Sequence record: NC_048674.1
Length of the DNA: 64,000 nt
Direction: 5' to 3' (one strand)
Under the pieces are notes generated by a model. The model did not search any database. It was not told the DNA's origin and saw only the letters and a list, made by a program, of their open reading frames with translations. Made by a program: the position numbers and the translations under genes. How positions within the stretch are numbered: the stretch's first letter is position 1; each line of letters opens with the position of its first letter. Shown piece after piece: positions 214 to 23,663 of this stretch.

Positions 214-216
214 AAC

Positions 217-247
217 AAAAAGGGACCCCATATCGGGATCCCTTTTT
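217..247. terminator. Bidirectional intrinsic terminator between convergent e and tk
   Basis: aaaaagggacccca-tatc-gggatcccttttt hairpin with A and T tracts. Confidence 0.8.
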
Positions 248-822: not shown

Positions 823-830
823 ATCATACC

Positions 831-1247
831 TCAGATAAAATCAGAAAACTTTTTACGACTCTCTTTGAGCCCTTTATAAAATGTTAATGGAAACTTATGA
901 GCCGCAATCAATAGATCCACAATATCACAACGAACCCGATATATTTCAATCAGGTTATCACCATCATTGGCTAACAATGCACTATACCGATGGTGTCCGT
1001 CTAGAATGTAGTTATCATCAGAAACAACAATAGGTTTTGATAACACACTATATGGTGCACTTCTCATCTTTTCCACTTTTTCTTCATTATACTCTGATTG
1101 AGTCGGAAGTAAAGTCTTTACTTTAACCCTTTCCTTAATAAACCCAACCCCGTTTGTTGTACACCAATCCAAAAATCCGGGGACGTTCTCGGCTGCAATT
1201 TGAGGCATATTTTGTCTATCTATACCTTTACTGTTTTCATATTTCAT
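831..1247 (-). CDS. ParB/sulfiredoxin-like domain protein
   Basis: PIVVSDDNYILDGHHR motif; CTAAATA at 1270-1276 upstream. Confidence 0.8.
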   Translation of the reverse strand: MKYENSKGIDRQNMPQIAAENVPGFLDWCTTNGVGFIKERVKVKTLLPTQSEYNEEKVEKMRSAPYSVLSKPIVVSDDNYILDGHHRYSALLANDGDNLIEIYRVRCDIVDLLIAAHKFPLTFYKGLKESRKKFSDFI

Positions 1248-1290
1248 TTCAATTCTCCTTAATATAACATATTTAGAGATTAGGAAATGA

Positions 1291-1314
1291 AAAAAGAGCC
1301 CGAAGGCTCTTTTT
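1291..1314 (-). terminator. Intrinsic terminator after hoc
   Basis: aaaaagagcc-cgaa-ggctcttttt; reads as a TTCG loop on the minus strand. Confidence 0.85.
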
Positions 1315-2080: not shown

Positions 2081-2133
2081 TTATAATACCTCAAAACGAT
2101 AAAGGGGCATTATGCCCCTTTTATTTAGTACCT

Positions 2134-2985: not shown

Positions 2986-3018
2986 TTTAATTTTCCTATA
3001 GGTTGATTACCTTGGTAT

Positions 3019-3312
3019 TTAGGCATCTACCCAATAAGAAAACTCTTCAATCGTCTTGAATACCATCATCCGTTTGTCTTTGAATCTAGTAACAACAATA
3101 CCGGATTCCATAACACCAACAATATATTCACATACCATTTCACATGGTTCATCAATAAAGCAAGCTTTAGTATAGAAAGTTTTGATCTTGGTATAGTTAC
3201 CCATATCAACAACTTCTACCTTTTCGTAAGCTTCTTCGCAGATTTCAATAACACGTTTTACATCGTACATCTTTATATCCCTTTTTATTCTTATAGTTTC
3301 TTCACTATACAC
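3019..3312 (-). CDS. Hypothetical protein
   Basis: 97-aa ORF in tandem gene order. Confidence 0.65.
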   Translation of the reverse strand: MYSEETIRIKRDIKMYDVKRVIEICEEAYEKVEVVDMGNYTKIKTFYTKACFIDEPCEMVCEYIVGVMESGIVVTRFKDKRMMVFKTIEEFSYWVDA

Positions 3313-3348
3313 AAATGAAAATCCCCCGTCAATAGACGAGGGATGTTT

Positions 3349-3750
3349 TTATTTGAAACGTTTTACCTTGTAGGTCACCAGCTTAATGAACTCCAATGAA
3401 TCCTCAAGTGCGTTTAAAGTTCCTTTAAACTCTGGTTTTCCATCAAGTAACTCAGCCAACTCAGAGCCGTTGTCGTAAAGTCCCTGTAACACACTCAGAG
3501 CGTCGTCTGACGCAACTTCAAAGTGGTTGTATACCAACTCGATGTCGTTAGCCAAGGCGCTCTCTGCAACCGAATCTAGGTAGTCATCTGGGAATTCCTT
3601 ATAGAACTCATCAAGTGCCATATGGAGCGCATAATTGTTGGTTGTAAGATGGAGAAAGTGGATCTTTGCAACCGTCTTTAATCCAAGAGTCACAAATCTA
3701 GATACTCTATCTGAGATTCGTTTCATATCATATTTATAAGCTATTTTCAT
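3349..3750 (-). CDS. Ferritin/Dps-like four-helix protein (DUF5856-like)
   Basis: HFLHLTTNNYALHMALDEFY motif with His/Glu spacing typical of phage ferritin-like proteins. Confidence 0.7.
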   Translation of the reverse strand: MKIAYKYDMKRISDRVSRFVTLGLKTVAKIHFLHLTTNNYALHMALDEFYKEFPDDYLDSVAESALANDIELVYNHFEVASDDALSVLQGLYDNGSELAELLDGKPEFKGTLNALEDSLEFIKLVTYKVKRFK

Positions 3751-4301
3751 TGCATTCCCAATTTAACGATTAATGAATCCATCTTGAATGCGGCATAACT
3801 AATTAGACCGTATGTGGTATTTATTTCTTTACCACCATCCAAGTGATATGAACAACTACTACGATTAGTGAATTGTCTCTGACCATTGGTACATGTGAAA
3901 TAAGGTTCATCAATAATGATCATACTATATTTTTCAATCCTACTTCCATGAATAACATGATTGTATGTACCACGAGAATAAAACCTATTAACAAAGTCGC
4001 TAATNGACAACACTTGGTNTTTTAAATGTGGTGCNACNGACAATATANATCTGATAGTAGGATGGTTGTGAACAANATACAAAGCGTCTTTATGTTCTTC
4101 TAACAACATAATAGCAGCAGATGTTTTTCCTGTTTGTCTTCCCATATCCAAGCATATAGTCCCCAACTCTTGTTGGAATGCATCAGGAGATATCATCAAT
4201 CGACTCCTGTCTAGATATTCGGAACTTTTAAATAATTTTAATTTTTTGTTTACCATACTAACATATTCGTCTCTAAAGAAACTGTTTGGCGATATCATCA
4301 T
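3747..4301 (-). CDS. P-loop NTPase-like protein (helicase/terminase-like motifs)
   Basis: MGRQTGKT Walker A and IIIDE Walker B; contains Ns. Confidence 0.65.
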   Translation of the reverse strand: MMISPNSFFRDEYVSMVNKKLKLFKSSEYLDRSRLMISPDAFQQELGTICLDMGRQTGKTSAAIMLLEEHKDALYXVHNHPTIRXILXXAPHLKXQVLXISDFVNRFYSRGTYNHVIHGSRIEKYSMIIIDEPYFTCTNGQRQFTNRSSCSYHLDGGKEINTTYGLISYAAFKMDSLIVKLGMQ

Positions 4302-4329
4302 ATCTGTTTTACCTTCTTATTAGTTTATT

Positions 4330-4539
4330 TTAATAAGCCATCGCGAACATACGACGCTGTTTTGCTCGAAGGTCTTCACCTTCTTTCTCTTTCAACAGTT
4401 CATCCGGCTTTGCATCCAGACTAACCTGTTTGGCTTCTACGTTTTCCCACAGTTTGGAGTTATACCATTTTTCATTACCACCATTGGCACCACCACGACC
4501 CTCACGGGCATGACTTTTCTCATGAATATTCTTAGCCAT
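4330..4539 (-). CDS. Hypothetical late protein
   Basis: 69-aa ORF, GGAG RBS, CTAAATA at 4569-4575. Confidence 0.7.
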   Translation of the reverse strand: MAKNIHEKSHAREGRGGANGGNEKWYNSKLWENVEAKQVSLDAKPDELLKEKEGEDLRAKQRRMFAMAY

Positions 4540-4578
4540 TTAAAACTCTCCTATAGTTGATATGAACATATTTAGGGA

Positions 4579-4764
4579 TTAAAGACTACGAATAATCGAC
4601 ATAGCAATCAAAACGGGCCAAATTGCTGATACAGAAAGATAATCCATAACTTCTTTAAAAGTAGGGGTCCTATCCTCTTCTCGGTCTTGATGATCGGTAA
4701 TCCCAAATGCGGTAATGAATACCAGAACACCAATCAAATACACAATAAAAATTCCAGTCAACAT
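4579..4764 (-). CDS. Small membrane protein
   Basis: Two hydrophobic helices; GGAG RBS. Confidence 0.7.
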   Translation of the reverse strand: MLTGIFIVYLIGVLVFITAFGITDHQDREEDRTPTFKEVMDYLSVSAIWPVLIAMSIIRSL

Positions 4765-4789
4765 ATCAAATTCTCCGTTAATAAAAAGA

Positions 4790-5020
4790 AAAACGGGGAC
4801 TATATCAAGCCAGTCAAAGCAAGATAAAGTCCCCGTTGCCGAACGTTGTCTTTGGTGTCAGACAACAACCTTGTGATAGTGGTAGGTCACACCACCCTCT
4901 TTAAAACGGGGACCATAATCGAGGCAATATGGTCTCTTTTCGTCTAGTGACAATACAGGGTATCACCTTTACCCTTGACTCGTATTGTTTGACGCCGCTG
5001 CGCCACTCTTGGGGCGCGTA
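4790..5020 (-). ncRNA. Candidate structured RNA (cluster of five or more hairpins)
   Basis: Stems 4792-4801/4828-4837, 4845-4851/4860-4866, 4911-4917/4928-4934, 4950-4962/4970-4988, 5000-5004/5013-5017; strand inferred from operon. Confidence 0.45.
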
Positions 5021-5032
5021 CACTTTAAAATC

Positions 5033-5284
5033 TTAACTATATTGATAACCGGCGTTAGCCTTTTTCATTTCGTAATCATCATCAACAAAAACATCGTGAT
5101 TACCGTGCATGATATCATGTTTCAATTTACGATCTCGCTGACGACTCAATGTATTATAACGATCTTTGACACCCGATTCTGGATAACTAGGATATTTATC
5201 TCCCAGATCCCGATTCACTTTAAGTTCATCACCATACCAACTGTCCAGATGTTTTTCATTTTTACGACGAAATGTCTTACCCAT
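5033..5284 (-). CDS. Hypothetical basic protein
   Basis: 83-aa ORF (MGKTFRRK...) with AAGGA RBS. Confidence 0.7.
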   Translation of the reverse strand: MGKTFRRKNEKHLDSWYGDELKVNRDLGDKYPSYPESGVKDRYNTLSRQRDRKLKHDIMHGNHDVFVDDDYEMKKANAGYQYS

Positions 5285-5294
5285 ATATCATTCC

Positions 5295-5489
5295 TTACAG
5301 GCTTTCTATGTATTTAATCACACGGTTTAGTATTTCATTTGAATCATTTATCTCAATATCATCAAATGCATACTTTATCTTTTTTATTACAGTTTCTTTC
5401 TTCCATCCGATCTTGAAAGCATCATTAACGAAAGAAACCCAATCAATAATATAACCGGAATTATAAAATTTCTCTATCAGAATATCCAA
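5295..5489 (-). CDS. Small protein resembling the alanyl-tRNA synthetase YDTYGFPLD helical segment; start uncertain
   Basis: Frame open well upstream of the TTG at 5489: ...VFYQFETNGIPLDILIEKF...IDWVSFVNDAFKIGW. Confidence 0.55.
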   Translation of the reverse strand: MDILIEKFYNSGYIIDWVSFVNDAFKIGWKKETVIKKIKYAFDDIEINDSNEILNRVIKYIESL

Positions 5490-5639
5490 TGGAATACCAT
5501 TTGTTTCAAACTGATAAAATACATTACATAAAACCGGAATACCATTATTGGTATAACCATTTACAAAAACACTATTTTTACCTTTACGTCCTAACGGCTT
5601 GCGTTTAGCGGTGACATATACAACCTCTCTTTTTAAGTT

Positions 5640-6112
5640 TTAGCTTCATGTGCGGCTGCAAAGCAGGTCGAACCACCAAGGCACATACTTGTTGATGTGG
5701 TTCCGTAAATCGATCCGGTCGCACCATCACCGGACTTAATAGCATTGGCTATCCGAGCCCAACATACAAACATCATCACCCCAATGGGCTACGCCTGCAA
5801 AACGGTCTTGCTCGTTACTTTTACGCTTAGGCCCTTATGGGAATCTAAGCCTTATATTTAACGTCATAACGGACGCGCTTATGTGATGGCTTGAATCAGT
5901 GGTCATTCACAAGCAATACTCCCTATGTAACCTTTTACCCGTCACGGACTAGAACCTTATTACAGGGAAGGAACCTACATCACCATTTGAGTAATGGGAG
6001 AGGTCGGGGTTCGGTTTTTATTTTCTAGCTTTCACTAGATTTTTTACAAATACCGGTGGGCTACTTAAAGCGTCGATTCTCATAGACCGGACTATTGACG
6101 AGAATCCAAAAT
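5640..6112 (-). ncRNA. Candidate large structured non-coding RNA downstream of tRNA-Thr
   Basis: No ORF of 60 aa or more; long-range helix 5970-5981/5694-5704, many nested stems, predicted pseudoknot 5866-5871/5813-5818. Confidence 0.6.
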
Positions 6113-6113
6113 T

Positions 6114-6189
6114 TGGTGCCGAATGTCCGACTCGAACGGACCACCCCAGCGTTACAAAGGCTGTGCTCTACCAGATGAGCTAATTCGGC
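6114..6189 (-). tRNA. tRNA-Thr (TGT)
   Basis: Cloverleaf GCCGAAT..ATTCGGC-A-CCA, loop TTTGTAA, TTCGAG T-loop. Confidence 0.93.
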
Positions 6190-6190
6190 A

Positions 6191-6467
6191 GCGGATTATA
6201 ATCAGGATCGTTAGACTGTGATTATATCCTAATGTAGTTGACATGCTATCACAAGGAGGAAGGACGTTCAACTGATTTTGTCCATCTGTTCGTTGTTTGG
6301 TAAAGGACAGTTACCTCAAGTTCAACCCTGCTTGTCAAGGAGTAGTTACCATATCGTCTTTATACTACCAATCCCGCCTGAAACCTAAAGGCACGTTTCA
6401 GGATATCCAGATTCTCTATGGCTGGCTTATTCCGGGGCATACGTCGTTACCCGTTCTTTGTGCTAAG
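6191..6467 (-). ncRNA. Candidate structured RNA between tRNA-Pro and tRNA-Thr
   Basis: Stems CCTGAAAC/GTTTCAGG and GGAT-ATAATCA/TGATTAT-AATCC; internal segment ends ...GTCCTTTACCA. Confidence 0.4.
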
Positions 6468-6543
6468 TGGTCGGTGATACAGGACTCGAACCTGTGACCC
6501 TCTGGTCCCAAACCAGACGCGCTACCAACTGCGCTAATCACCG
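6468..6543 (-). tRNA. tRNA-Pro (TGG)
   Basis: TCTGG-TTTGGGA-CCAGA anticodon arm; encoded CCA. Confidence 0.96.
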
Positions 6544-6697
6544 AAAAGTTCCAAACCAACTGTATTTTACATACCAGATGACCACATCCCTATAATGGTT
6601 GATTTGGATTACCCCGTGCTTATCCGTAACGGTTTAAAACCGCAAGGGGGCATCGTCTCCGAGGATTTTATCAGAACGTCTTCTAACTTCTTCTATT

Positions 6698-6788
6698 TGG
6701 TGGATGCTGTTGGATTCGAACCAACTTGTTTACCCAGAGGGAACGGATTTACAGTCCGCCGCTACACCGCCATCGTAGCCGAACATTC
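6698..6788 (-). tRNA. tRNA-Tyr (GTA)
   Basis: GCGGA-CTGTAAA-TCCGT, long variable arm, CCA. Confidence 0.93.
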
Positions 6789-6794
6789 AGAATT

Positions 6795-6870
6795 TGGCTG
6801 GCGAGGTGGGATTCGAACCCACGACATACGGATTAACAGTCCGCTGTTCTACCTACTGAACTACACGCCA
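6795..6870 (-). tRNA. tRNA-Asn (GTT)
   Basis: GCGGA-CTGTTAA-TCCGT, TTCGAA T-loop, CCA. Confidence 0.95.
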
Positions 6871-6871
6871 T

Positions 6872-6949
6872 TGGAAGCGGGAGGTGGATTTGAACCACCG
6901 ATTTCCAGATAATGAGTCTGGCGAGAACTCCTGACTTCTCCACCCCGCT
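6872..6949 (-). tRNA. tRNA-Met (CAT), atypical
   Basis: CCAGA-CTCATTA-TCTGG, AGCGGGG acceptor, CCA; T37 and T73. Confidence 0.85.
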
Positions 6950-6953
6950 ATGA

Positions 6954-6960
6954 TATTTAG
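6954..6960 (-). promoter_or_regulatory. Late promoter CTAAATA immediately upstream of tRNA-Met
   Basis: tatttag on the plus strand, 4 nt from the tRNA 5' end. Confidence 0.6.
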
Positions 6961-7111
6961 GGTGGTCTTTCACCCTTCATGAATCTTGGTCATTATAACC
7001 CGGCTACATACGCGCATCAACATCCCTTTATAATTTTAAAAGCTAGGGGACTCATACCAGCTTTATTGTCATCGTAAGGTCAACGACCATTAAATTTGTG
7101 AGAGCTTACGA

Positions 7112-7306
7112 CTATAGAATATATGCATTAACTATGGATTTTTCGATCTGTCTTACTGATGTAAGTTTACTCTTACCTTTAAACTTAAAGGCAGGTTCTC
7201 CATTTGGAGCAAACCCAAAGACTACTAAACTATGGCGTCCATTCTTCCAATGGATTATACCATCACCAACTGACCAATTTTCAATTATGGATTTTATACC
7301 AGACAT
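7112..7306 (-). CDS. Hypothetical protein within tRNA cluster
   Basis: 64-aa ORF on the operon strand. Confidence 0.55.
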   Translation of the reverse strand: MSGIKSIIENWSVGDGIIHWKNGRHSLVVFGFAPNGEPAFKFKGKSKLTSVRQIEKSIVNAYIL

Positions 7307-7327
7307 AATATAGTTCTCATCAAAATT

Positions 7328-7404
7328 TGGTGGCCCCTACTGGACTCGAACCAGTGACCAACCGATTATGAGTCGGTTGCTCTAACCAACTGAGCTAAGG
7401 GGCC
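7328..7404 (-). tRNA. tRNA-Ile2 (CAT, lysidine type)
   Basis: GGCCCCT acceptor and CTCATAA loop closely resemble enterobacterial ileX. Confidence 0.9.
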
Positions 7405-7438
7405 AAACAACACGTATAATACGTATTACTATTGAATT

Positions 7439-7514
7439 TGGAGCGGGTAGCCGGTAACGATCCGGTCTACTCAAACTTGGAAGGCTTGCATGTATCCATA
7501 AACACCTTACCCGC
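7439..7514 (-). tRNA. tRNA-Gly (TCC)
   Basis: CAAGC-CTTCCAA-GTTTG; atypical ATCGTTA T-loop; TCCA end. Confidence 0.9.
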
Positions 7515-7515
7515 T

Positions 7516-7599
7516 TGGTCGGGATGGACGGACTCGAACCGTCACGCCTATGGCGCTAGAACCTAAATCTAGTGTGTCTGCCAATTTCACCACATCCCG
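7516..7599 (-). tRNA. tRNA-Leu (TAG)
   Basis: CTAGA-TTTAGGT-TCTAG, variable arm, CCA. Confidence 0.93.
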
Positions 7600-7676
7600 T
7601 GGTGCGCCGTACTGGATTCGAACCAGTGACCCACGCTTTAGAAGAACGTTGCTCTATCCAACTGAGCTAACAGCGC
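7600..7676 (-). tRNA. tRNA-Arg (TCT)
   Basis: ACGTT-CTTCTAA-AGCGT, CCA. Confidence 0.95.
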
Positions 7677-7680
7677 AATT

Positions 7681-7727
7681 TATATAAACATCATATCATA
7701 GTTAGAAAGGATGTTTAACTTTTATTT
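7681..7727 (-). promoter_or_regulatory. Sigma70-type early promoter, copy 1 of a 47-bp direct repeat
   Basis: TTAAAC (7713-7718)-17 nt-TG-a-TATGAT (7690-7695), upstream of tRNA-Arg. Confidence 0.75.
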
Positions 7728-8120
7728 GAAGTATTTTTCGAAGTAAGCGACTGGATGTCTTGCTTCTTCATCATACTCGTATTTAGGGGTGTCAGAAAAC
7801 AACACCCTATAAGCAGTTTTCGACCCGGAACCATATGGTATCTCAATTTCATCATTAAAGTCAAATTCTATATAACCTTTTTTACGAAGGGACCGGCAGC
7901 TAACACTCAACCAAGGTCCGCAACAGGATTTGAGTCTACCAATTGCGTAGATATCCTTTCCCTCGTTGTTAATATAGCAATAAATCTTGTCTACATCAAC
8001 ACCATGGATATTTTTCCATTCTTCACTGGTTTGTTTGAAGATCAAACTTGATTGAACCACAGTAAGACCTTTCTTGATAAACTTACTAATACCAATGAGA
8101 TGAATATCATGTTTATTCAT
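7722..8120 (-). CDS. Hypothetical protein
   Basis: 132-aa ORF, ATGA overlap with the upstream gene. Confidence 0.7.
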   Translation of the reverse strand: MNKHDIHLIGISKFIKKGLTVVQSSLIFKQTSEEWKNIHGVDVDKIYCYINNEGKDIYAIGRLKSCCGPWLSVSCRSLRKKGYIEFDFNDEIEIPYGSGSKTAYRVLFSDTPKYEYDEEARHPVAYFEKYFK

Positions 8121-8506
8121 GATAAACCTTCATATATTTCCATATCCCATGCAATAATTTCTCCAACTTTGTAAGTATCACCGTTACGAATAGCTAATGA
8201 TCGGACACAAAAAGAAGGAAGGCACCCATGAACATCATATACTTTGTCATTGGTTATTTCTACATCACCAGTAACAATAATGATATTATCTTTCTTGTAA
8301 GTTTCTATGGAATTAAGAATACCAACCGGATCCGGAGTATCTTTAGCATTATCAATGTTAAAACATTTTTGACCAAAATTGATTAGAACAGGTAGTTTTT
8401 TAGAAAATTCATCTATAACTTGTTCATTCAAAATGAATTTTAATCCGTTCGTATTAACCAAAGAACTTTTTTCATTAAGGTTGTAAGCCCCAAGCTTCAC
8501 TTTCAT
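8117..8506 (-). CDS. Hypothetical protein
   Basis: 129-aa ORF. Confidence 0.7.
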   Translation of the reverse strand: MKVKLGAYNLNEKSSLVNTNGLKFILNEQVIDEFSKKLPVLINFGQKCFNIDNAKDTPDPVGILNSIETYKKDNIIIVTGDVEITNDKVYDVHGCLPSFCVRSLAIRNGDTYKVGEIIAWDMEIYEGLS

Positions 8507-8507
8507 T

Positions 8508-8654
8508 TTAATATCTCGATTTTTGATAGAAAGGCTTCAAATGTTTACCACGCATAATCTTTACACATTTACCTTTACAGTGTTCTTCGTTGAAGACACT
8601 ACCCCAAAGGACTCCACACATGTAATTTCTGATGTATACGTTCATATTAAGCAT
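8508..8654 (-). CDS. Small Cys-containing hypothetical protein (48 aa)
   Basis: Hand-translated MLNMNVYIRNYMCGVLWG...KSRY; abuts the next gene. Confidence 0.45.
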   Translation of the reverse strand: MLNMNVYIRNYMCGVLWGSVFNEEHCKGKCVKIMRGKHLKPFYQKSRY

Positions 8655-8742
8655 CTCATATTGAATTTGAGAGATGATAAACTCACATAACGTCCAAAAA
8701 GCTCATTCAACAAAAAGGAATTTGAGTTTATCATCTTGTATT

Positions 8743-8835
8743 TGGTGCGTGAGGTGGGAATCGAACCCACGATGTGCCATTATGCAGTATCGGATTTTAA
8801 GTCCGATGCGTTTCAACCAACTTCGCCACTCACGC
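8743..8835 (-). tRNA. tRNA-Leu (TAA)
   Basis: TCGGA-CTTAAAA-TCCGA, long variable arm, CCA. Confidence 0.93.
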
Positions 8836-8840
8836 TCATT

Positions 8841-8887
8841 TATATAAACATCATATCACAGTTAGAAAGTATGTTTAACTTTTATTT
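8841..8887 (-). promoter_or_regulatory. Sigma70-type early promoter, copy 2 of a 47-bp direct repeat
   Basis: 45/47 identical to 7681-7727; upstream of tRNA-Leu(TAA). Confidence 0.75.
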
Positions 8888-9135
8888 TTACTTTCTTTTA
8901 TACCAAGTCGATATGCTTCTACACAGTATGCGTCGATCCTTGATACAGGGACCATAAAAGCTTTAGAAAGCCGATTCTTAATACGTTCGTTCTCTTTAGC
9001 CCGCTCATATAGTTTTCGAAATGGCTCAGGGTCTATAGGCTGAACAGAACATATTTGGTTTGCTATATCCAGCGGATATATTCTTCCACCCCAAGTTACT
9101 TTTTCTGATTCTAAAAAATTCATATCATTTCTCAC
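8875..9135 (-). CDS. Hypothetical protein
   Basis: 86-aa ORF overlapping the upstream gene end. Confidence 0.65.
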   Translation of the reverse strand: MRNDMNFLESEKVTWGGRIYPLDIANQICSVQPIDPEPFRKLYERAKENERIKNRLSKAFMVPVSRIDAYCVEAYRLGIKESKNKS

Positions 9136-13430: not shown

Positions 13431-15289
13431 GTTGACGGTTGAACTCCATATGAATATTGCGGTTGATCTGGTCTAAATTCACCAAAGCCAGACGGTAGAA
13501 CGGAATTCATACTGTTATATGTAGTATTATTTACAGCAGCCATTAAAGCACCTTCTTGTCGTCGTGCGTCTCGTTCTTCCTTTTCACGTTGTTGTTTAGC
13601 TCGGAATTCTTCAACCTCTTGGTTTCTTTTCTCAAGGGTTTTAAATACAGGCTCGGTTTCACCAGCCTTAATTTCATTCCCTAATTTAGATTCCGGTTGA
13701 GCTTCATTAGCATTAGCTTTCCCAAACAATGATCCAGTAAGACTTTCCCAAGCACCCTTAGCAGCATCAACACCCTTATCTAACAGCTCTGGGTTCTCTT
13801 TGGCGAAGTTATACAACTCATAAGCCATCAAGCCAGCACCAACAAAAGGAATTGCTCTACCAGCGACACGTACCGCCATACCGGCACCAGTCAATGCGCT
13901 TTTTGGTATAAATTTAGAGGCTGATTTTGCAGCATCGGCAGCAACAGACCAACCTTTTTTACCAAGATCCGCCGCCTTTGACAAAATACCAGCTTTCCCT
14001 TTAGGGGTAGGTGTCTTTGTTTTAGGGGTCTCTATTTTTGCTGGTTGTCCGGGTTTAGGTTCCGGTGTGGGTGTCTTCTTTCCATCGGGTGTTGTAGTTT
14101 TTGGAGACTTCTTAGGATCCTTCGATACATCGTTTGGATTAACCCCACCAGACGATGGTGTCGGGGTCTTACTTCCCAATCCCGGTATCTTATCAAACAA
14201 CCCAGAGAACTTAGCAATTAAACCACCAACAGCAGCAGATAGGGCACCCGCAATCATAGGAGCCAAACCAAGAACCGCACCAGATAGAACACTGATACCA
14301 GAAACAAGGCCACTAAGAACAAACCCAACACCACCAATCAATTTACCGATCAACATGGACATCTGGATACCTTTAAGAACATCGATTAAGCTTTTATGAC
14401 GCTTTTCGTTGTTCTCTCGTTCTCTTCCATTTTCTTGTCTTTCTTTCTTTTGCTCTTGGTTATTTCTATCTGTTTTTACTTTGTCTTCGGGTTTGTTTTG
14501 TGGGATCTGCTGGAATCTAGAAGTAGCATCAGCCTTCTTCTCTTCATAAGCCGCATTCGCTTTTGCATCTAATTTCTTTTCCTTACGTGCGTTATGTGCA
14601 TCGATAATAGACCCACCAACAAACTTCGTTGCATTAGCGGCCTGATTATAACCGGGAATAGTTGATAACAAATCGTTTATGGTTCCAGTAACCATACCGA
14701 TACCAGCGGACATAGTATGACCAAGTATTTTCGCTGTTGCTGATGTTTCTGATTTCTTCATTCGGTCAACTATATTAGCTTTTTTTGCTATCTCTCGAAC
14801 AAATTTACCAGTTTTTTGATTTTCTTCTTTGAAATTTTCCACAAATTCACGACGATCACCAACTTCTCGTTGTATAAATTCTTTCAAAGTCTCCCTAGTG
14901 TCTTCCTGCATAGGTTTGGCAGTTTCCCCCTGTTCTGGGTTCTGACTTTTTACACCTTGGCTATAATCCACTAGGGGTTGTTTATTATTTAAAATGTCTT
15001 CCAGTTGCTTTCGTCTAGCCGAAACTAATTCGTTTTCAACCTTATTACTACGCTTATTATCCTTTCTGGCACCTTTTATCTGGTTCGCTAATTTTTCTTG
15101 TTCTTGTGCGACTTCCAGACTGGAATCAGATGTAATATCATAAGACGCGGTAAGGTCTTTTGTTGAGTTGGACAACTTTTCTGTCTTGTCGTCCAACTTA
15201 AGCATCGAATCAGAAACAATATCCATAGCATCCGTGACATCTCGAACCGATTTATCAAGTTCGTTCTGTTTCTGCTTGTCAATCATCAC
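13427..15289 (-). CDS. gp29: Tape measure / baseplate hub gp29
   Basis: 620 aa, coiled coil, Gly-rich hydrophobic segment, P/K/T-rich linker; located after gp26 and before gp3. Confidence 0.75.
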   Translation of the reverse strand: MMIDKQKQNELDKSVRDVTDAMDIVSDSMLKLDDKTEKLSNSTKDLTASYDITSDSSLEVAQEQEKLANQIKGARKDNKRSNKVENELVSARRKQLEDILNNKQPLVDYSQGVKSQNPEQGETAKPMQEDTRETLKEFIQREVGDRREFVENFKEENQKTGKFVREIAKKANIVDRMKKSETSATAKILGHTMSAGIGMVTGTINDLLSTIPGYNQAANATKFVGGSIIDAHNARKEKKLDAKANAAYEEKKADATSRFQQIPQNKPEDKVKTDRNNQEQKKERQENGRERENNEKRHKSLIDVLKGIQMSMLIGKLIGGVGFVLSGLVSGISVLSGAVLGLAPMIAGALSAAVGGLIAKFSGLFDKIPGLGSKTPTPSSGGVNPNDVSKDPKKSPKTTTPDGKKTPTPEPKPGQPAKIETPKTKTPTPKGKAGILSKAADLGKKGWSVAADAAKSASKFIPKSALTGAGMAVRVAGRAIPFVGAGLMAYELYNFAKENPELLDKGVDAAKGAWESLTGSLFGKANANEAQPESKLGNEIKAGETEPVFKTLEKRNQEVEEFRAKQQREKEERDARRQEGALMAAVNNTTYNSMNSVLPSGFGEFRPDQPQYSYGVQPST

Positions 15290-15460
15290 TTAGTCCTTTT
15301 CTCTCGCCTGTTCTTTAAGATCGTTTAGGTAGAGGTGAACATAAACACCAAATTCAAAGGGGGTCATATCCTCAAGGTCCGAATGGCTCCATCCATCTTT
15401 TCTAAGCTTATATACCGTATTAAAATGATCGTATATGGTATGGTTAACAAGCGTTATGCG
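15290..15460 (-). CDS. Start-less 56-codon frame (gpT/GpE-prime-like extension of gp26)
   Basis: RITLVNH...GWSHSDLEDMTPFEFGVY...EKD; no ATG/GTG/TTG until codon 32; entered via T TTT TTC at 15460-15466. Confidence 0.7.
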   Translation of the reverse strand, partial: RITLVNHTIYDHFNTVYKLRKDGWSHSDLEDMTPFEFGVYVHLYLNDLKEQAREKD

Positions 15461-16239
15461 AAAAAACTTTCTACCCCTTTAAGTGTAACAATTTCTTGGT
15501 GTCCACATTTTTTACACTTTACAGGTATATTTAGAGTATGTTGGGGGAGGGATGTTACAAATTTACCCATTTTGGTCAAAGCAACTGAATCGGCGTATTC
15601 CATAATTTCAGAAATATCCTCATACGGAATATCAACACCAACCTTAACAACCTGATCTCCCATATGAACTTCGTCAATACAGCGATTGATTAAGTTAAAC
15701 AAGTCGGACTCAACTTCTACGTTGAAATATTCAACCTCGCTGATATTAGGATATCTCATATAAACTGTCATGTTCTCATTCAGAACAATTTTGTTATCTG
15801 GTGCATCCGACAATTTAGCGTTATTCAAGTTTACGTTTACTTTGATATCAGAGCCACAACGAATAATTTCACCATATTGGTCATATTGAACATTACCATC
15901 TTCATCGAGAATTTCGTTGGCGCAAGTAAACATAACCGGGACAGTTGGACTTGCTTTTGATAACTTATACAAAGCTAGATAAACTGCTTCCAAGTCAAAC
16001 ACAGGTAAAAGGTCTACATCAACATTATCAGTTAGGATACAGTTTTTTACGATTTGGATGATTGCATCATCGATTCCAGTATTGGCTTCGTTAGCTAACA
16101 TCAACAGTTTCATTTCTTTCATCAAGAAAGCACGAACCTTGATCTTTCTACCATCTGATAAAGTCACATTGGTCTGCTGTACGTTTTTCTGCATAGCAGC
16201 AAGAAGTACACTCTTGTCAATCGTGGTTTTGTTTGTCAT
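15454..16239 (-). CDS. gp26: Baseplate hub assembly protein / chaperone gp26
   Basis: VRAFLMKEMKLL, DLEAVYLALY, CKKCGH...LKGVESFFA; late promoter 16268-16274. Confidence 0.85.
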   Translation of the reverse strand: MTNKTTIDKSVLLAAMQKNVQQTNVTLSDGRKIKVRAFLMKEMKLLMLANEANTGIDDAIIQIVKNCILTDNVDVDLLPVFDLEAVYLALYKLSKASPTVPVMFTCANEILDEDGNVQYDQYGEIIRCGSDIKVNVNLNNAKLSDAPDNKIVLNENMTVYMRYPNISEVEYFNVEVESDLFNLINRCIDEVHMGDQVVKVGVDIPYEDISEIMEYADSVALTKMGKFVTSLPQHTLNIPVKCKKCGHQEIVTLKGVESFFA

Positions 16240-16312
16240 AGTTAAAAATCCCTTATAGATCTATACTTATTTAGTACATTGTAACATGATGTTCTTCAAG
16301 ACTTAATCTTAG

Positions 16313-16435
16313 ATAGTTTCACTTGCAATCAAACTATAAAGTCTCTATAAGTATTTATATAGAAAATCTATAATTAGAAAGAGTGTGAGCGAAGCGAACA
16401 GGCGGCTACGCCGTCTCACTACGTTCGAGATCTAT
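16313..16435. repeat. Dispersed repeat, copy 1 (AT-rich tract plus GC hairpin cluster)
   Basis: Reverse complement matches 58523-58643 with about 4 mismatches and a 2-nt indel. Confidence 0.92.
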
Positions 16436-16442
16436 AGATATG

Positions 16443-16467
16443 AAAAAGCCACCCCGTAGGATGGCTT
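16443..16467 (-). terminator. Terminator after gp54
   Basis: aaaaagccaccccgtaggatggctt; near-identical copy at 59011-59036. Confidence 0.7.
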
Positions 16468-16471
16468 AGTA

Positions 16472-17413
16472 TTAACGAATGGCTTTCACAACGCCTGTAG
16501 TACGTCTTATGATACTCTCTATAGAGTCGATGGTGTTCTCTTCACCCTTAGTAGGAACATGCACTGTGGTTGATACAGCGAATGTGACGGTAAAGGTTGC
16601 TACCTGAGAATTGTTCTCAAAATCTAGTTGAACTTCACCTACCTCTATGGGAAAGCACCCTGTATTATGTACCGTGGATTGCTTAACTCCATGACGGTCT
16701 AACGTGATGACGTCAATATCCTTTGCATACGTATTATAAAATCCAAATTGTCCATTTCTTGGGTTGACAATTGTATTCTGCCATGTTAGCATCAAAGAAC
16801 GTTCCTCATAAGAAGGGGAACAGTAAAACGTCATACTCATGGTTCCGTAGTTTCTACCTCTAACTTCGTGTCTAGGTAGTTTGTCTGTACGGTTGATTGT
16901 CGTTTCCAAAGTAGAACTAGGAAGACCGACACTCTTTACCATTAATGCTAGATCTCTGTTTACATCGTAATCAGTTCCCAAAAATCCATCAAGGATCTCT
17001 CCTGCTCCCGGTATGATCCGGATCAAGGACGGGTCCCAAGCACCAAAAATCTTCTTCATGCTAGGCGTGAGGATTTTGTGTGCTTGTCCCAAAGCAATGT
17101 CCTGAACTCTATGCCAAGCATAACTTGTACCAGAGAAAAGACTATCATTGACGTCCATCCCGCTACTTGAATCAGGAAATATTGGTAAATCCCTATCAAA
17201 AACACCATCACTGAATATAGAGGTTCGGAAATCTCCGAACCTTACAATAAACATGTTTGGTCTAGCCAAATCGGTATTCTCAACTTTCCGCATAAACCTA
17301 GTTAGATCGGGGATCTCGCTTGCATCCCCACCATCGTTTAATAAATCTTCACCAAACCCGATAGTACTATCTATCATACTATCTATGGTTGGAATAGGTG
17401 GTATTAAGTTCAT
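16472..17413 (-). CDS. gp54: Baseplate-tail tube initiator gp54
   Basis: DLARPNMFIVRF and LMVKSVGLP gp19-like fold motifs; start at the TAATG overlap with gp2. Confidence 0.85.
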   Translation of the reverse strand: MNLIPPIPTIDSMIDSTIGFGEDLLNDGGDASEIPDLTRFMRKVENTDLARPNMFIVRFGDFRTSIFSDGVFDRDLPIFPDSSSGMDVNDSLFSGTSYAWHRVQDIALGQAHKILTPSMKKIFGAWDPSLIRIIPGAGEILDGFLGTDYDVNRDLALMVKSVGLPSSTLETTINRTDKLPRHEVRGRNYGTMSMTFYCSPSYEERSLMLTWQNTIVNPRNGQFGFYNTYAKDIDVITLDRHGVKQSTVHNTGCFPIEVGEVQLDFENNSQVATFTVTFAVSTTVHVPTKGEENTIDSIESIIRRTTGVVKAIR

Positions 17414-18411
17414 TAGTATGATCTCCAAACGGAATTCGTATTATAGGTCTTCGGAGGAACACCAGATACAAACCGCTGAGTCGGTAGATTAATGACAGAA
17501 CTCCAATCCTGCGGTTTAATCTCCATTAATGGACCCTTAATATGACCCGGCAAATACGCTTTGATCATATGGTCTGCACCTCTCATTCCCTTAACCTTAC
17601 CCCAGTTGATATTTAGGGATGTACGGTTGGTAATCCTCTCTGTTGTTGCATGTTTCAGCAACTCTTCCATAAATTCTTTACGGGCTTTGATCGGGATATA
17701 GTGAAGGTTGAGACCCAACATCAAACCTTTGTGTTTTGCACTTAGGCCAAGATATACGATCAGGGGGAATTTATCCCAGTATGGTAGTGTTGCCTTATGT
17801 TTTGCGTCGTATGCGAAAGTATACAATCGACCAGCAATTGGTCTTGTTACTTGGTGACCACGAACGTTTTTCTTTATGAAATTGTTAAACCATTCCGTTG
17901 ACTTCTTCTGAGACTTTACAGGCTCTTTTTCGTGTTGTCTTACTTTATTTCTAAAGTCAGCCAACAACATCTGATATTTTTCGGCTTTAGATAGTTTTCT
18001 TCCGCTTATTTTCGCATCTTTTAACTTCTTAGCCAGTAGAATATCTTGCTTGAATCTTCTGAATGCCCGTTCCGTGGTTTCTTTATTAAGTCCACGTCCT
18101 TCAATATAATTTTTTAGAGTAATGCTACTCTTTTCTTTTTGTGTCAAATAATCAACACCAAGCTCAATCCATTGTTGTTTATTCTTGTTTGGGTTTACCA
18201 GAGAATAATAAGTCTTTATTTCTTCTCTGTGTCTGCGCATAGCTCTACTGAATGTTTCATAATTCAACCCTTTTTCCTCTGCATATTTCTTTGCAGTAAG
18301 ACTTGGGTTCTTTTTCTTGGCGTTCATATAATCAACACCAACATCAATCCATTGTTTTCTATTGCGTTTTTCTGTTGTGGACTCTGCACGTTCAGTTATT
18401 TCGAATATCAT
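17413..18411 (-). CDS. gp2: DNA end protector gp2 with duplicated N-terminal domain
   Basis: YTFAYDAKHKATLPYWDKFPLIVYLG, GLNLHYIP. Confidence 0.96.
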   Translation of the reverse strand: MIFEITERAESTTEKRNRKQWIDVGVDYMNAKKKNPSLTAKKYAEEKGLNYETFSRAMRRHREEIKTYYSLVNPNKNKQQWIELGVDYLTQKEKSSITLKNYIEGRGLNKETTERAFRRFKQDILLAKKLKDAKISGRKLSKAEKYQMLLADFRNKVRQHEKEPVKSQKKSTEWFNNFIKKNVRGHQVTRPIAGRLYTFAYDAKHKATLPYWDKFPLIVYLGLSAKHKGLMLGLNLHYIPIKARKEFMEELLKHATTERITNRTSLNINWGKVKGMRGADHMIKAYLPGHIKGPLMEIKPQDWSSVINLPTQRFVSGVPPKTYNTNSVWRSY

Positions 18412-18878
18412 TTAGTAAGTCCTTTGAAACCCATTGCTCTCAATGAGTCCTCATTAATTATATTAAATCTCCACCCTTTTTTCTTGCATAATTCAGCGGT
18501 GGTTTTCCATTTGTCGTTATTGACTTGCCATGTATACACAGCTTGAATATAAGCATTTTTTGCTTTTAATGTATTTCTTTTTGGTGGTACTGGTGGAAAG
18601 CATTCTTTTTTAGGCTTAACTTCCCAGAGAGAAATAGAACCGTCGGACCACTGTATCCACATATCCATAAAATAACGTCGTTTCTTTCCATCTGCATTAG
18701 AAAAATACGGAATGACCATACATTCGCTGTTCCAATATCTAACGTCTGGATTATTATCCAACATCTCCATTATATACTTTTCCCACGAACTACGGTAGGT
18801 AACCTTTTTTGGGTCTCCTTTATATTTTTCTCTATTCTTTACAAAGTATTGACCTTTGTATGTATTATTTCCGGCCAT
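18408..18878 (-). CDS. gp4: Head completion nuclease gp4
   Basis: KYKGDPKKVTYRSSWE, RRYFMD, EVKP. Confidence 0.96.
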   Translation of the reverse strand: MAGNNTYKGQYFVKNREKYKGDPKKVTYRSSWEKYIMEMLDNNPDVRYWNSECMVIPYFSNADGKKRRYFMDMWIQWSDGSISLWEVKPKKECFPPVPPKRNTLKAKNAYIQAVYTWQVNNDKWKTTAELCKKKGWRFNIINEDSLRAMGFKGLTK

Positions 18879-18899
18879 AATAAATTCTCCTATTTGTTT

Positions 18900-18922
18900 T
18901 ATTTAGGGTTTGCCCCTAAATA
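18900..18922. promoter_or_regulatory. Back-to-back divergent late promoters for gp4 and gp48
   Basis: tatttaggg-tttgc-ccctaaata. Confidence 0.8.
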
Positions 18923-18947
18923 CAAGTAAACAACATGAGGTTTAAAA

Positions 18948-20006
18948 ATGAAAGTTAATATTCTCAATGGGGTTAATAGAGCTACTGGTGGTAGTTTCAA
19001 CCCACTCACTGACACTAAGTCAGAGGGAACTGATCTTATTATAGAAAATAAAAACTCTAAGAAACCCGGTATAAAGGCTTTACAGTACCCATTAACCATG
19101 AAGGGTAGTGACAACAAACACTCTTCCTATTTAGTTTTCTATGCTGTGAAACCAACAAATGGGGGGCTTAAAAACAGTGATATCCACGAACGTTCTATGA
19201 GGTCTGTTAAGGGTAAATTCAACGAAGAAACCCTAGCCGTTATTCAGCTATATATGCCAAACATGAACGAAAACATTAGCCATAATTATGAAGATAACGA
19301 TGGTGGATTCCTTCAAGATATAGTTATGAACTACCAAGCCAACGCATCAGAAAGAGATGGAACATTAGATAGCATTGCAAACGGTGGTAAAGCCGTTGTA
19401 AACGCAATGGCACAAAAGGTTATCGTCTCCACTGGTGGTATTGCACAGCGATATAATTCTCAGGTAACTGGTAATTTGCTTGGTGATCGAGCCGCCCAAA
19501 TGTATCGTGGTACTGGTGTACGTTCCCAAACATTTATATTTCAATTCCGACCGAGGTCTATGGCAGAATTAAAAGAGGTTGGACAAATAATTAAAACTTT
19601 TATGGTTCTTAGTGCTGCCGAAAACAAAGGGGCTGTAGATCTTGCTTCTCTTGGAATTGGTACTGATTCAGAACTTGGTGCGGGTGAAGGGTATACTTAT
19701 CTCGAAGTACCACCTTTGTGGTTTATAGAAGAAAGGGTAAGTCAAAGTCAAGAACAGAAGATTAGATTTACACCTAAATTCGCAATGGGTCCAGCCGGTA
19801 TTAGTAATATCCGGATCAACAAAACCCCAGACCAAATATATGATACATTCGCGTCAACGGCTGCGGATTCCGTCGCAATAGATCTAGAAATAACTGTTAC
19901 AGAACTTCGTCCGGTTTATCGCGATTACTGGGAAGCTCTTACATCAGATTTGGGTAATCCTGATTCTGGTGAATTCTTCTTCGGTTCGTATGGAGGTAAG
20001 AGATAA
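18948..20006 (+). CDS. gp48: Baseplate tail tube cap gp48
   Basis: RSQTFIFQFRPRSMAELKEVGQII...PPLWFI. Confidence 0.88.
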   Translation: MKVNILNGVNRATGGSFNPLTDTKSEGTDLIIENKNSKKPGIKALQYPLTMKGSDNKHSSYLVFYAVKPTNGGLKNSDIHERSMRSVKGKFNEETLAVIQLYMPNMNENISHNYEDNDGGFLQDIVMNYQANASERDGTLDSIANGGKAVVNAMAQKVIVSTGGIAQRYNSQVTGNLLGDRAAQMYRGTGVRSQTFIFQFRPRSMAELKEVGQIIKTFMVLSAAENKGAVDLASLGIGTDSELGAGEGYTYLEVPPLWFIEERVSQSQEQKIRFTPKFAMGPAGISNIRINKTPDQIYDTFASTAADSVAIDLEITVTELRPVYRDYWEALTSDLGNPDSGEFFFGSYGGKR

Positions 20007-21797: not shown

Positions 21798-23632
21798 AAT
21801 TTGAATTCTTTTTTGGCGTTGTAGAGGATCGGTTTGATCCTCTTAATCAAGGTAGATATAGAGTTCGTGTGATGGGATATCATACTGATCAAAAATCAAA
21901 AGATGATTTGATTGGTATACCTACTGATGAACTTCTTTGGATGCGCTGTGCCACGTCAACGGATTCAGCCTCTATATCTGGTGTGGGAAATAGTCCAACA
22001 AACCTAGTAGAGGGTGTGTGGGTTATGGGGGTTTTCAAGGATGAATTTAAACAGGATGGTTTAATACTTTTTTCTATCCCCGGATCTTATGTCCAAAAAC
22101 CAAATACTCTACGGGGATTCTGTGACCCAACAGGTCAATACCCTCGTTATATTGGTAACGACGTTAATATATTAGCCGGTGGTGGACAAAAAGGGGCTGG
22201 TATTCATGGAACTGCCCCGGTGTCTATTGATGGAAAGCCGTTATCGGTTTATACTCAGGATGAAAATACTTCTGGTGCATTAGCCCCTGATGACAAATCA
22301 TTTGACGATGCAATCGCAGATGACGATCCGGATTTCACAATTGAAAAAATGTTGAAGGGGGACGAAGGGGTTAGGAACAAATGGTATCTCGATTCTCTTG
22401 GATATCCAACCATAGGTATTGGTCATCTAATCATACATGAGAATACACGAAACGTAGCCCGTATAGATGCGATTCTAACCCAACAGTTGGGTCATCCTGT
22501 ACAAGGGGGTGTGATCTCCCCAGAAGACGTTACAAAGCTGTTTAACGAGGATATCCAAAAGACTCGTGCTGATATGATGAGATTCGAAAATATACGTCGT
22601 GTCTACGTCAAAGAAAATAGAAGTCGTCAAATGGCTTTAGAAAATATGGCGTTTCAGATGGGGGCTGGCGGATTAGCGAAATTCAAAAATACACTAAACG
22701 CTATGTATGAAGAACGTTGGCGAGATGCATATAATGGTATGCTCGACTCTCTTTGGGCTAGACAAACTCCGGGTCGAGCGAATCGGGTTGCCAAGATTAT
22801 TTTAACCGGAAACCTAGAGTCTTATGGAGTAAAACCAAAACCAGAGGAACCGCCTATTATCCCAATATCTGGGAGAATGAAGCGTTCTATTATGGCATTG
22901 TCCTCTCCGGTTGTTTTTGCTGACGAAGTAGACCCAGATGATCCGTCCGTTCCACCACCACCTCGTACTGATGGTCTTCTTTTCGAAGAACCACCTAGCG
23001 CATATGCTGCTGAATACCCATATAACCATGTATATGAATCGGAGAGTGGTCATATTCAGGAATTTGATGATACTCCGGGGAAAGAACGATATAACCTGAA
23101 ACATACATCAGGGACGTATATTGAGATTTCTGGTGGTGGTCGTCAAGTAAACAAAGTTATGGGTGATGACTATGTTATCGATATGGCAAACCGGATGATC
23201 AACGTAAAGGGTGATTATCAGGTAGTTGTTGAAGGTAACGCGACTGTATACGTTATGGGTAACTGTACCCAGCAAGTTGATGGAAACTTGACTCAGGTTG
23301 TCAAAGGAAACGTATCTGAATCGGTTTATGGTAACGTTGAACAGTCGGTGAAGGGGAACGTTAAGCAAACTGTTAACGGTGGCTTAGAATCGCGTATAGA
23401 CGCTGATGTGACCCTATCTGTCGGTGGTAGTGTTGTTAGTGATATAGAAGGGAATTTAACTGCAACAGTTCAAGGTAATTGCAACGAGAACGTAGAAGGT
23501 GATATGAACCTTAATGTTTTTGGTGATTATACAGTTACTGTATCTGGTGACTATAAATCGCAAGCTGCTCAATCTCTTATTACCTCTCAAGGTACGACCG
23601 AGATTAGTGGTTCTACTGTTAGTATTAACTAA
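21794..23632 (+). CDS. gp5: Baseplate spike and tail lysozyme gp5
   Basis: OB-fold FFGVVEDRFDP, lysozyme DEG...YPTIGIGH, beta-helix V-x-G-N repeats. Confidence 0.98.
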   Translation: MKFEFFFGVVEDRFDPLNQGRYRVRVMGYHTDQKSKDDLIGIPTDELLWMRCATSTDSASISGVGNSPTNLVEGVWVMGVFKDEFKQDGLILFSIPGSYVQKPNTLRGFCDPTGQYPRYIGNDVNILAGGGQKGAGIHGTAPVSIDGKPLSVYTQDENTSGALAPDDKSFDDAIADDDPDFTIEKMLKGDEGVRNKWYLDSLGYPTIGIGHLIIHENTRNVARIDAILTQQLGHPVQGGVISPEDVTKLFNEDIQKTRADMMRFENIRRVYVKENRSRQMALENMAFQMGAGGLAKFKNTLNAMYEERWRDAYNGMLDSLWARQTPGRANRVAKIILTGNLESYGVKPKPEEPPIIPISGRMKRSIMALSSPVVFADEVDPDDPSVPPPPRTDGLLFEEPPSAYAAEYPYNHVYESESGHIQEFDDTPGKERYNLKHTSGTYIEISGGGRQVNKVMGDDYVIDMANRMINVKGDYQVVVEGNATVYVMGNCTQQVDGNLTQVVKGNVSESVYGNVEQSVKGNVKQTVNGGLESRIDADVTLSVGGSVVSDIEGNLTATVQGNCNENVEGDMNLNVFGDYTVTVSGDYKSQAAQSLITSQGTTEISGSTVSIN

Positions 23633-23634
23633 CG

Positions 23635-23663
23635 AAAAGGGATCCCAAATCGGGATCCCTTTT
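23635..23663. terminator. Bidirectional terminator after gp5
   Basis: aaaagggatccc-aaatc-gggatccctttt. Confidence 0.88.

Follow-up and report, generated by a model that had tools for sequence, protein, structure and literature searches.

A noncoding element of ∼125 bp that stands twice, in opposite orientations, among the genes of a T4-type phage raises the question of what such an element does there. The 64,000-nt window analyzed here comprises bases 62001 to 126000 of Aeromonas phage AS-sw (MF498775.1, a record titled “partial genome”), a T4-type phage with a ∼230-kb genome classified within the Straboviridae, Emmerichvirinae, Ceceduovirus. A repeat search of the window returned the pair as two inverted arm matches, 16313-16385 with 58571-58643 (73 nt, 95% identity) and 16382-16435 with 58523-58576 (54 nt, 98%), which are offset from each other by 2 nt, corresponding to a GT indel. 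Reading of the two sequences gave four substitutions and one 2-nt indel (96% identity). The inverted duplication reported in a preliminary description of this DNA was thus confirmed by both routes, and every motif named there was found in the sequence. Copy 1 (16313-16435) runs from an AT-rich to a GC-rich module on the plus strand and is antisense to both of its neighbors, gp54 and gp26; copy 2 (58523-58643) has the AT module followed by the GC module on the minus strand, in the same sense as its flanking genes. A 33-nt core pattern has two exact occurrences in the window and none in 100 shuffles.

BLAST, profile searches, and pattern scans of the full AS-sw record placed copies near 6.3, 48.2, 78.3, 120.5, 146.4, and 187.3 kb, with those at 78.3 and 120.5 kb corresponding to window copies 1 and 2. 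Both members of the original pair are real, but the element is not a two-copy one, as four more sites lie in the record outside the window. We refer to these noncoding, intergenic elements as cassettes. CC2 has six copies and phage 65 has six sites, and a translated comparison of the flanks established synteny of each of these six with a site in AS-sw, that is, across both genera of the subfamily (the CC2 group and the phage 65 group). The count across genomes and relatives that had been proposed as a check thus gave six cassettes per genome rather than a pair, with matches in 21 phage records, all of them Emmerichvirinae, at 1 to 8 places per record depending on the query. Among the sites examined, none was empty. 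The gaps between the six sites span 26 to 51 kb, and the minimum gap of 25.8 kb has a P value of 0.004 in a random-placement simulation (a post hoc test). Two of the sites lie among structural genes, one between gp54 and gp26 and one after the tail fiber genes.

Outside this subfamily, a search of a genome collection gave a single match, to a prophage, and the matches in metagenomes were to relatives of phage 65, plus one chance match. Plasmids gave no match to the cassette. We rejected exact-core matches in other viral contigs as chance likenesses to AT-rich sequence. No description of the cassette was found in Rfam or in the searchable literature.

The AT module, delimited in an alignment of 20 distinct copies (16313-16379, plus strand, in copy 1), is ∼67 bp long. 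It begins with a conserved left block, TAGTTTCA, followed by two variable bases, TG, one variable base, and AATCAAA, and it also holds CTATA motifs ∼11 bp apart and an invariant block, TATAATTAGA. The GC content of the module over 60 bp is 0.17 to 0.20, which falls in the lowest 0.1 to 0.5% of all 60-bp windows of the genome. The alignment places a dyad at its center (TCTATA at 16344-16349 and TATAGA at 16358-16363 in copy 1), and around this dyad two putative −10-type hexamers point outward. The left-arm hexamer of copy 1 (TATAGT, 16334-16339, minus strand) faces gp26 and reads TATANT across the copies, position 5 alone varying, with all four bases seen there. The right-arm hexamer, TATAAT, faces the GC module (16369-16374, plus strand, in copy 1; 58582-58587, minus strand, read directly in copy 2) and is kept in 18 of the 20 distinct copies. 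Its variants, TATACT in the prophage and TACAGT in one arm in phage 65, differ at positions 3 and 5 only. This pattern of variation is what would be expected if the hexamers served as −10 elements.

A sigma-70-like pair on the plus strand of the copy 1 AT module (TTGCAA, 17 nt, TATAAG; 16323-16351) is weak, its second hexamer having no T at position 6; a promoter scan did not call this pair in AS-sw and phage 65 and called it, marginally, at 9/12 in the prophage. As a hairpin, the dyad scores z = −5.3 in phage 65 and z = −2.1 in the prophage, and it is not significant in the AS-sw copies (z = −0.4 and −0.6). The preliminary description had leaned on TATAAATA, the late motif of T4, which lies on the minus strand of copy 1 at 16352-16359. 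The native late-promoter motif of AS-sw, drawn from the upstream regions of ∼20 late genes, is CTAAATA, mostly preceded by C residues (e.g., 18923-18929, 54300-54420, and 16268-16274), and late motifs of this type are found likewise in distant T4-type phages. Given the native motif, and given that every phage 65 copy reads TATTAATA at this position, we rejected TATAAATA as a T4 late promoter. The cassette was likewise set aside as a typical early promoter, because the native early promoters are strong TTGAC(A/T)-17-TAnAAT sites.

The GC module of copy 1 (16385-16427, plus strand) consists of GTGAG (16385-16389), CGAAG, CGAAC (16395-16399), a 4-bp hairpin, CGGC-TAC-GCCG (16403-16413), and then CTCAC (16415-16419), TAC, and GTTCG (16423-16427). 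In copy 2 (58531-58573, minus strand), GTGAG lies at 58573-58569, CGAAC at 58563-58559, CTCAC at 58543-58539, and GTTCG at 58535-58531. Given the order GTGAG-CGAAG-CGAAC, hairpin, CTCAC-TAC-GTTCG, the GTGAG/CTCAC and CGAAC/GTTCG pairings cross, and the branched hairpin first proposed for this block has to be replaced by a pseudoknot topology or by alternative pairings. The minimum-energy fold is a long bulged hairpin. The three-helix model pairs 99% of cells over eight distinct main-type copies, versus 28 to 43% when the partner is slid. Compensatory change is confined to one base pair, and the observed score was reached in 18 of 500 shuffles. The c6k copy of phage 65 and the c48k-type copies carry the same 5-mers shifted from crossing to nested order with complementarity kept, which lends informal support to a structure in the GC module. 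Forward-minus-reverse folding energies range from −4.5 to +3.4 kcal/mol with no consistent sign, and several G-U pairs occur on the AT-to-GC strand. The loops of the GC hairpin vary between copies within one genome, and the module has no T-run. With Rfam 15, only tRNAs passed the gathering score over the window, and nothing credible up to E = 10 was found over 16250-16480. The window contains eight tRNA genes clustered on the minus strand (6117-8835); a 61-nt direct repeat (7678-7738 and 8838-8898, 89% identical) adjoins two of them.

We then considered the gene context of each copy. Along the late genes, copy 1 is preceded by gp54 and its intrinsic terminator (16446-16467, minus strand, just outside the cassette), enters with its GC side first, and is followed by the CTAAATA of gp26 (16268-16274, minus strand), which lies between the cassette and the gene. 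The latter is a baseplate hub gene (15454-16239, minus strand; Pfam T4_baseplate, E = 2.5e-54) annotated as gp26 in phage 65. At copy 2 the order is a 73-aa gene (58738-58959, minus strand), its intrinsic terminator found by a terminator scan (58672-58691, minus strand), the cassette with its AT module leading, a promoter-like site distinct from the cassette (TTTATA, 17 nt, TAAAAT, the second hexamer being preceded by TG; 58491-58519, minus strand), and a DprA-like gene (57924-58484, minus strand). The name DprA-like recombination mediator is that of RefSeq, and the Pfam match is subthreshold (E = 0.0013, residues 3 to 47). A plus-strand CTAAATA (58503-58509) is directed into copy 2, whose GC side it meets first; this promoter had been called correctly from the start and is conserved in CC2 and phage 65. 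The tail fiber and vs.1 sites have the same terminator-cassette-promoter layout.

The c6k site is arranged differently, in that the GC module ends 14 to 20 nt before the ATG with a Shine-Dalgarno sequence directly after it (CC2, ZPAH1, and phage 65), which leaves no space for another promoter. At four sites the cassette is in the sense orientation (AT, GC, gene) and at two it is antisense, and every site has exactly one side that faces a sense gene. At three to five sites a further promoter, belonging to the downstream gene, intervenes between that gene and the cassette. Cassettes in either orientation mark transcription-unit boundaries. An AsiA gene is present in AS-sw, and no MotA domain was found in the five genes tested beside asiA.

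Several other noncoding signals recur in these genomes. A conserved terminator hairpin with the stem GCCACCCC / GGATGGC follows gp54, an inh-like gene, and a tail fiber gene (window 16430-16482 and 58999-59051; record ∼142.5 kb), and a second recurring terminator family is represented at window 214-246 and 23631-23663. The motif GGAATTGATT.TAGA forms the basis of a long hairpin that directly adjoins the c48k and c6k cassettes (AS-sw record 48321-48387; left c6k flanks in CC2 and in ZPAH1, extract 1400-1497) and is also present downstream of the vs.1 copy of phage 65.

Comparison of copies within and between genomes suggested how the family has evolved. Within CC2, four copies are 90 to 97% identical, and same-site orthologues in phage 65 are 75 to 86% identical. 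That paralogues are more alike than orthologues points to gene conversion or concerted evolution and indicates that the copies within a genome are homogenized by gene conversion. In ZPAH1, two different sites share a single distinctive GC variant. The flanking intergenic DNA fails to align between the genera, whereas the cassette aligns at 75 to 86%; being alignable where its flanks are not, and being kept at six sites in two genera, the cassette is by this comparison under selection. The arrangement itself differs locally: in the gp54/gp26 spacer of phage 65 (extract 248-458), which is orthologous to window copy 1, two inverted AT modules around two small GC hairpins replace the single AT module and standard GC module.

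One of the earlier suggestions was an inversion switch, in which copies 1 and 2 would serve to flip the intervening 42-kb morphogenesis block. The copies are inverted and 96% identical, T4-type phages recombine avidly, and the cassettes demonstrably exchange sequence. However, both window junctions are full length, on the same relative strand, and 42 to 44.5 kb apart in ten relatives (those in which both junction searches gave coordinates), and the order of copies 1 and 2 is the same in phage 65 and ZPAH1. As the junctions keep the same relative strand in the relatives, crossing over has left no trace. No recombinase gene adjoins the window copies. In one DNA-like sequencing run, depth was 51 on the cassette versus ∼10 beside it (about fivefold), and loose ends matched the flanks of other cassette copies; among these alternative flanks no inversion joint was listed. 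With a single orientation in the ten relatives, ZPAH1, and phage 65, we consider an inversion switch highly improbable.

The repeats have consequences for the records themselves. The AS-sw record contains a 6-kb inverted duplication (450-6389 versus 126530-120531, 98.4% identity; the part within the window is 58531-64000), and one of its boundaries falls inside a cassette copy. The left-end (c6k) junction of this record is unique to AS-sw, other genomes having a different left flank there. The window junctions, on the other hand, are intact elsewhere; it is the left end of the AS-sw record that is chimeric, with the join falling inside the repeat. The region around copy 1 is 100% identical in the AS-sw record and 91 to 99.7% identical in 13 relatives, and 14 records, CC2 and vB_AdhaM_G2 among them, contain at full length the junction of copy 2, which runs from the DprA-like gene through the cassette to the 73-aa gene. 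With the junctions of each copy intact in 14 records, we rejected the concern, raised in the preliminary description, that one copy could be an assembly artifact. Both window copies are genuine, and the context seen in the window is the authentic one.

The sixth site is truncated in the AS-sw record, its counterpart in AS-zj is collapsed around an N, and the 187-kb copy in AS-sw is full of ambiguous bases. The window holds 44 clustered ambiguous (IUPAC/N) bases (e.g., 4005-4076, 38337-38373, and 60214-60322), which put X residues into open reading frames such as 59851-60117 and 60117-60836. The clusters of ambiguous bases and the N-riddled 187-kb copy point to a low-quality AS-sw consensus. 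In the 254-kb AP1 record (121933-124462), the gp26 side of copy 1 is joined to the right flank of the sixth (tail fiber) site, with gp54 31 kb away from that join; such a join reflects either true recombination between direct copies or an error of assembly. RNA-labeled sequencing runs gave patchy, directionless contigs that were broken or branched at the repeat. In two of these runs, over window 13600-19400, contigs connect the left flank of c48k with a GC module of the copy 1 type and with the 3′ end of gp54, and such contigs are either recombinant molecules or the product of an assembler threading through the repeat. The cassette misleads short-read assemblers, and genome comparisons and phage therapy dossiers that use the AS-sw, AS-zj, and AP1 records should allow for this.

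A 16-kb viral contig and the Aeromonas rivipollensis chromosome also contain the AT module and a 15-nt GC motif; the carrier is a temperate phage, whose genes include those for terminase, HNH, lysozyme, and Ant. There, inverted GC motif-plus-hairpin units on both sides of the AT block form a 147-nt palindrome (z = −11.7), and the composite lies within a 1.4-kb noncoding region between divergent genes together with three AATGACACTAT iterons. The prophage keeps the 15-nt GC motif and has no CTCAC/GTTCG partners. The same region contains four GGTTCGCT(T/A)CGCTC motifs in both orientations and a CGGC-TAC-GCCG hairpin as in AS-sw; iterons and motifs lie at 7401-7454 and 7520-7900 of one prophage sequence and at the equivalent 7250-7760 in a second. 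Only lysozyme and a SegE-like GIY-YIG endonuclease are encoded by both the prophage and AS-sw, and no trans-acting factor common to the prophage and the T4-type phages was found. The SegE-like GIY-YIG homing endonuclease gene of AS-sw (record 146602-147504) adjoins the sixth cassette site, and the prophage homologue (4564-5025), the only one there, lies 2.6 kb from the prophage cassette. The proteins neighboring the prophage cassette matched no family in Pfam, PHROGs, or the Atlas.

Based on these features, the most likely role of the cassettes, in our view, is that of signals controlling transcription, with recombination among the copies as well. In the specific form that we tentatively favor, each cassette would be a factor-dependent bidirectional promoter/operator, without a usable −35 element, joined to a structured GC leader or roadblock. 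RNA polymerase would recognize the AT block by its pair of −10 hexamers with the help of a factor, which would bind the central dyad at a distance of ∼27 bp upstream from each predicted start point. AsiA disables −35 recognition, and because the phage encodes AsiA, dependence on such a factor is plausible. One direction faces a gene at every site, and the GC block would form the 5′ leader of the gene-ward transcript at four sites and a structural block on the unproductive antisense side at the other two. The dispersed 125-bp homologies would at the same time offer substrates for homologous recombination. If this is correct, the cassettes would reveal a promoter class for AsiA-encoding phages, in which a limited check for MotA found nothing.

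The promoter/operator reading ranks as the likeliest of those that we compared, possible rather than probable, and it draws on several lines of evidence: the synteny of all six sites when AS-sw/CC2 are compared with phage 65; a cassette that aligns between genera where its flanks do not, with paralogues closer to each other than orthologues; the pair of outward-pointing −10-type hexamers, the way they vary, and the dyad centered between them; the sense gene on exactly one side of each site and the c6k arrangement with its adjoining Shine-Dalgarno sequence; the prophage GC motifs, inverted on both sides of the AT block as in divergent transcripts sharing a leader; and the presence of AsiA together with the precedent of promoter/stem-loop cassettes in T4-type phages (PMC4122927). 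It is weakened by the poor TTGCAA-17-TATAAG pair, which goes uncalled in AS-sw and phage 65, by the strength of the real early promoters of the phage, by the nonsignificant dyad of the AS-sw copies, and by the single compensatory GC pair and the absence of strand bias in folding energy. A cassette promoter would also be redundant at the three to five sites where the gene has its own. No candidate for the dyad-binding factor was identified. Sites for IHF, CRP, ArgR, sigma-54, lambda boxA, and herpesvirus OBP, compared by eye, did not fit.

A role as a replication-origin module, linked or not to a recombination hotspot, is an alternative that we hold to be unlikely. In that case the AT block would be an unwinding element opened by transcription from a neighboring promoter, the GC block would limit or organize the bubble, and six modules spaced around the genome would fire early in infection. 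The extreme AT richness of the modules, their more-even-than-chance (if post hoc) spacing, their presence in either orientation, and their position mostly in the spacer between a terminator and the next promoter are all consistent with this, as are the conserved late promoter that reads through the GC module into the AT tract at copy 2 and the iterons and strong palindrome in the noncoding region of the prophage. T4 itself has at least five origins, which measure ∼100 bp and consist of a promoter and an AT-rich unwinding element, but these origins have no common sequence motif (PMC3016281). Moreover, the cassettes have no MotA box, no MotA domain was found in the genes tested beside asiA, not all sites have a conserved promoter upstream of the AT tract, and no initiator-like protein common to the T4-type phages and the prophage was found. 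The spacing could also reflect loss of closely spaced direct repeats by deletion. The bolder version, a sequence-defined origin and recombination-hotspot module with six early-firing copies that is also used by an unrelated temperate Aeromonas phage, strikes us as distinctly doubtful; if real, it would give the T4-type phages, in which no motif is common to the known origins, their first consensus origin element, and an origin of either kind would make origin choice in these phages directly testable.

If function resided instead in the GC module as RNA, the AT block would drive a structured 5′ leader or small RNA, whose pseudoknot or long bulged hairpin would govern stability, termination, or translation. 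The near-complete pairing of the three-helix model, the crossing-to-nested rearrangement with complementarity retained in the phage 65 c6k copy and the c48k-type copies, the G-U pairs on the AT-to-GC strand, and the abutting Shine-Dalgarno sequence at c6k argue for an RNA. They are offset by the one compensatory pair with a score that shuffles also reach, by folding energies of inconsistent sign, by the lack of an Rfam match even at E = 10, by a prophage that has the 15-nt motif and not its partners, and by two of six copies that are antisense to their neighbors, with no terminator closing a short RNA. We consider the RNA reading improbable, and the lack of an Rfam match, strand bias, and closing terminator, together with compensatory change at one base pair only, leaves the small RNA of the preliminary description with no positive support. 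Equally improbable to us is a selfish or neutral repeat, spread once by recombination or homing-linked co-conversion and persisting by gene conversion. The composite does occur in an unrelated prophage that shares the SegE-like GIY-YIG endonuclease and lysozyme, one cassette site adjoins the phage's own seg-like gene, most sites are transcriptionally neutral spacers occupied in either orientation, and concerted evolution is seen. Against this, all six sites are occupied and syntenic in both genera, with no empty site among those examined, and the cassette is better conserved than the surrounding noncoding DNA in a compact genome. It also has no terminal inverted repeats, and short direct repeats flank the GC module only, in some copies.

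Known systems resemble the cassette in part. The T4 origins oriF (uvsY) and oriG (34) combine a MotA-box middle promoter with an unwinding element downstream (PMC3016281). Like the cassette, they are ∼100 to 125 bp, join promoter-like sequence to a very AT-rich tract, are spread in several places per genome, and lie in some cases within late-gene regions. The cassette differs in that its copies are homologous and its AT tract overlaps the hexamers rather than lying downstream. There is no TGCTT box, which in a MotA-dependent middle promoter is centered at −30; the conserved block at −30 of the weak promoter reads TG(C/T/A)AATCAAA, and a conserved promoter (CTAAATA) reads in at copy 2 only. The prophage version recalls the divergent early control regions of temperate phages, in which operator palindromes lie between divergent promoters, each followed by a nut-like leader; it has an AT palindrome with identical inverted GC motif-plus-hairpin units extending outward between divergent gene sets. 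Yet the motif is unlike boxA, no repressor or antiterminator gene was identified nearby, and the variation of the hairpin loops within a genome makes N-type loop recognition unlikely. As for mobile and RNA elements, the cassette ends, TAGTTTCA... and ...GTTCG, are not inverted repeats as in a MITE, and all six sites are occupied in both genera; no covariance model of Rfam matched; and, unlike an invertible segment present in both orientations, the intervening DNA is seen in one orientation only in the ten relatives, ZPAH1, and phage 65.

The closest parallel is with the PeSL and PmSL (promoter-early and promoter-middle stem-loop) cassettes of the T4-type phages RB49/phi1, PST/T4, and nt-1/KVP40 (PMC2839356, PMC4122927). 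Both they and the AS-sw cassette are short conserved composites of AT-rich promoter-like sequence and a GC stem-loop, repeated in intergenic spaces at transcription-unit boundaries and providing dispersed homologies for recombination. A PeSL has a terminator stem-loop just upstream of a good −35/−10 promoter, with a Shine-Dalgarno sequence and ATG at its 3′ end. In the AS-sw cassette, by contrast, the AT block is followed, not preceded, by the GC block; this block lacks a T-run and is a conserved sequence motif, where a PeSL has a generic stem, and the terminators nearby are separate elements that differ between sites. The −35 is poor (the TTGCAA-17-TATAAG pair is again the one called only in the prophage), and a 3′ Shine-Dalgarno sequence with a start codon is found only at c6k. 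There are six copies rather than dozens in hyperplastic regions, at sites fixed across genera rather than variable, and several lie in core or late gene blocks in either orientation. Judged by these sequence comparisons, the cassette appears to fall outside the oriF/oriG, PeSL, MITE, and Rfam families, although under the promoter/operator reading it would be the functional counterpart of PeSL cassettes. We would class it as a variant form among the dispersed regulatory cassettes of T4-type phages, outside the PeSL family. The noncoding signals of T4-type phages other than T4 are almost unmapped, and here a single cassette marks six fixed positions in two genera and recurs in a temperate phage.
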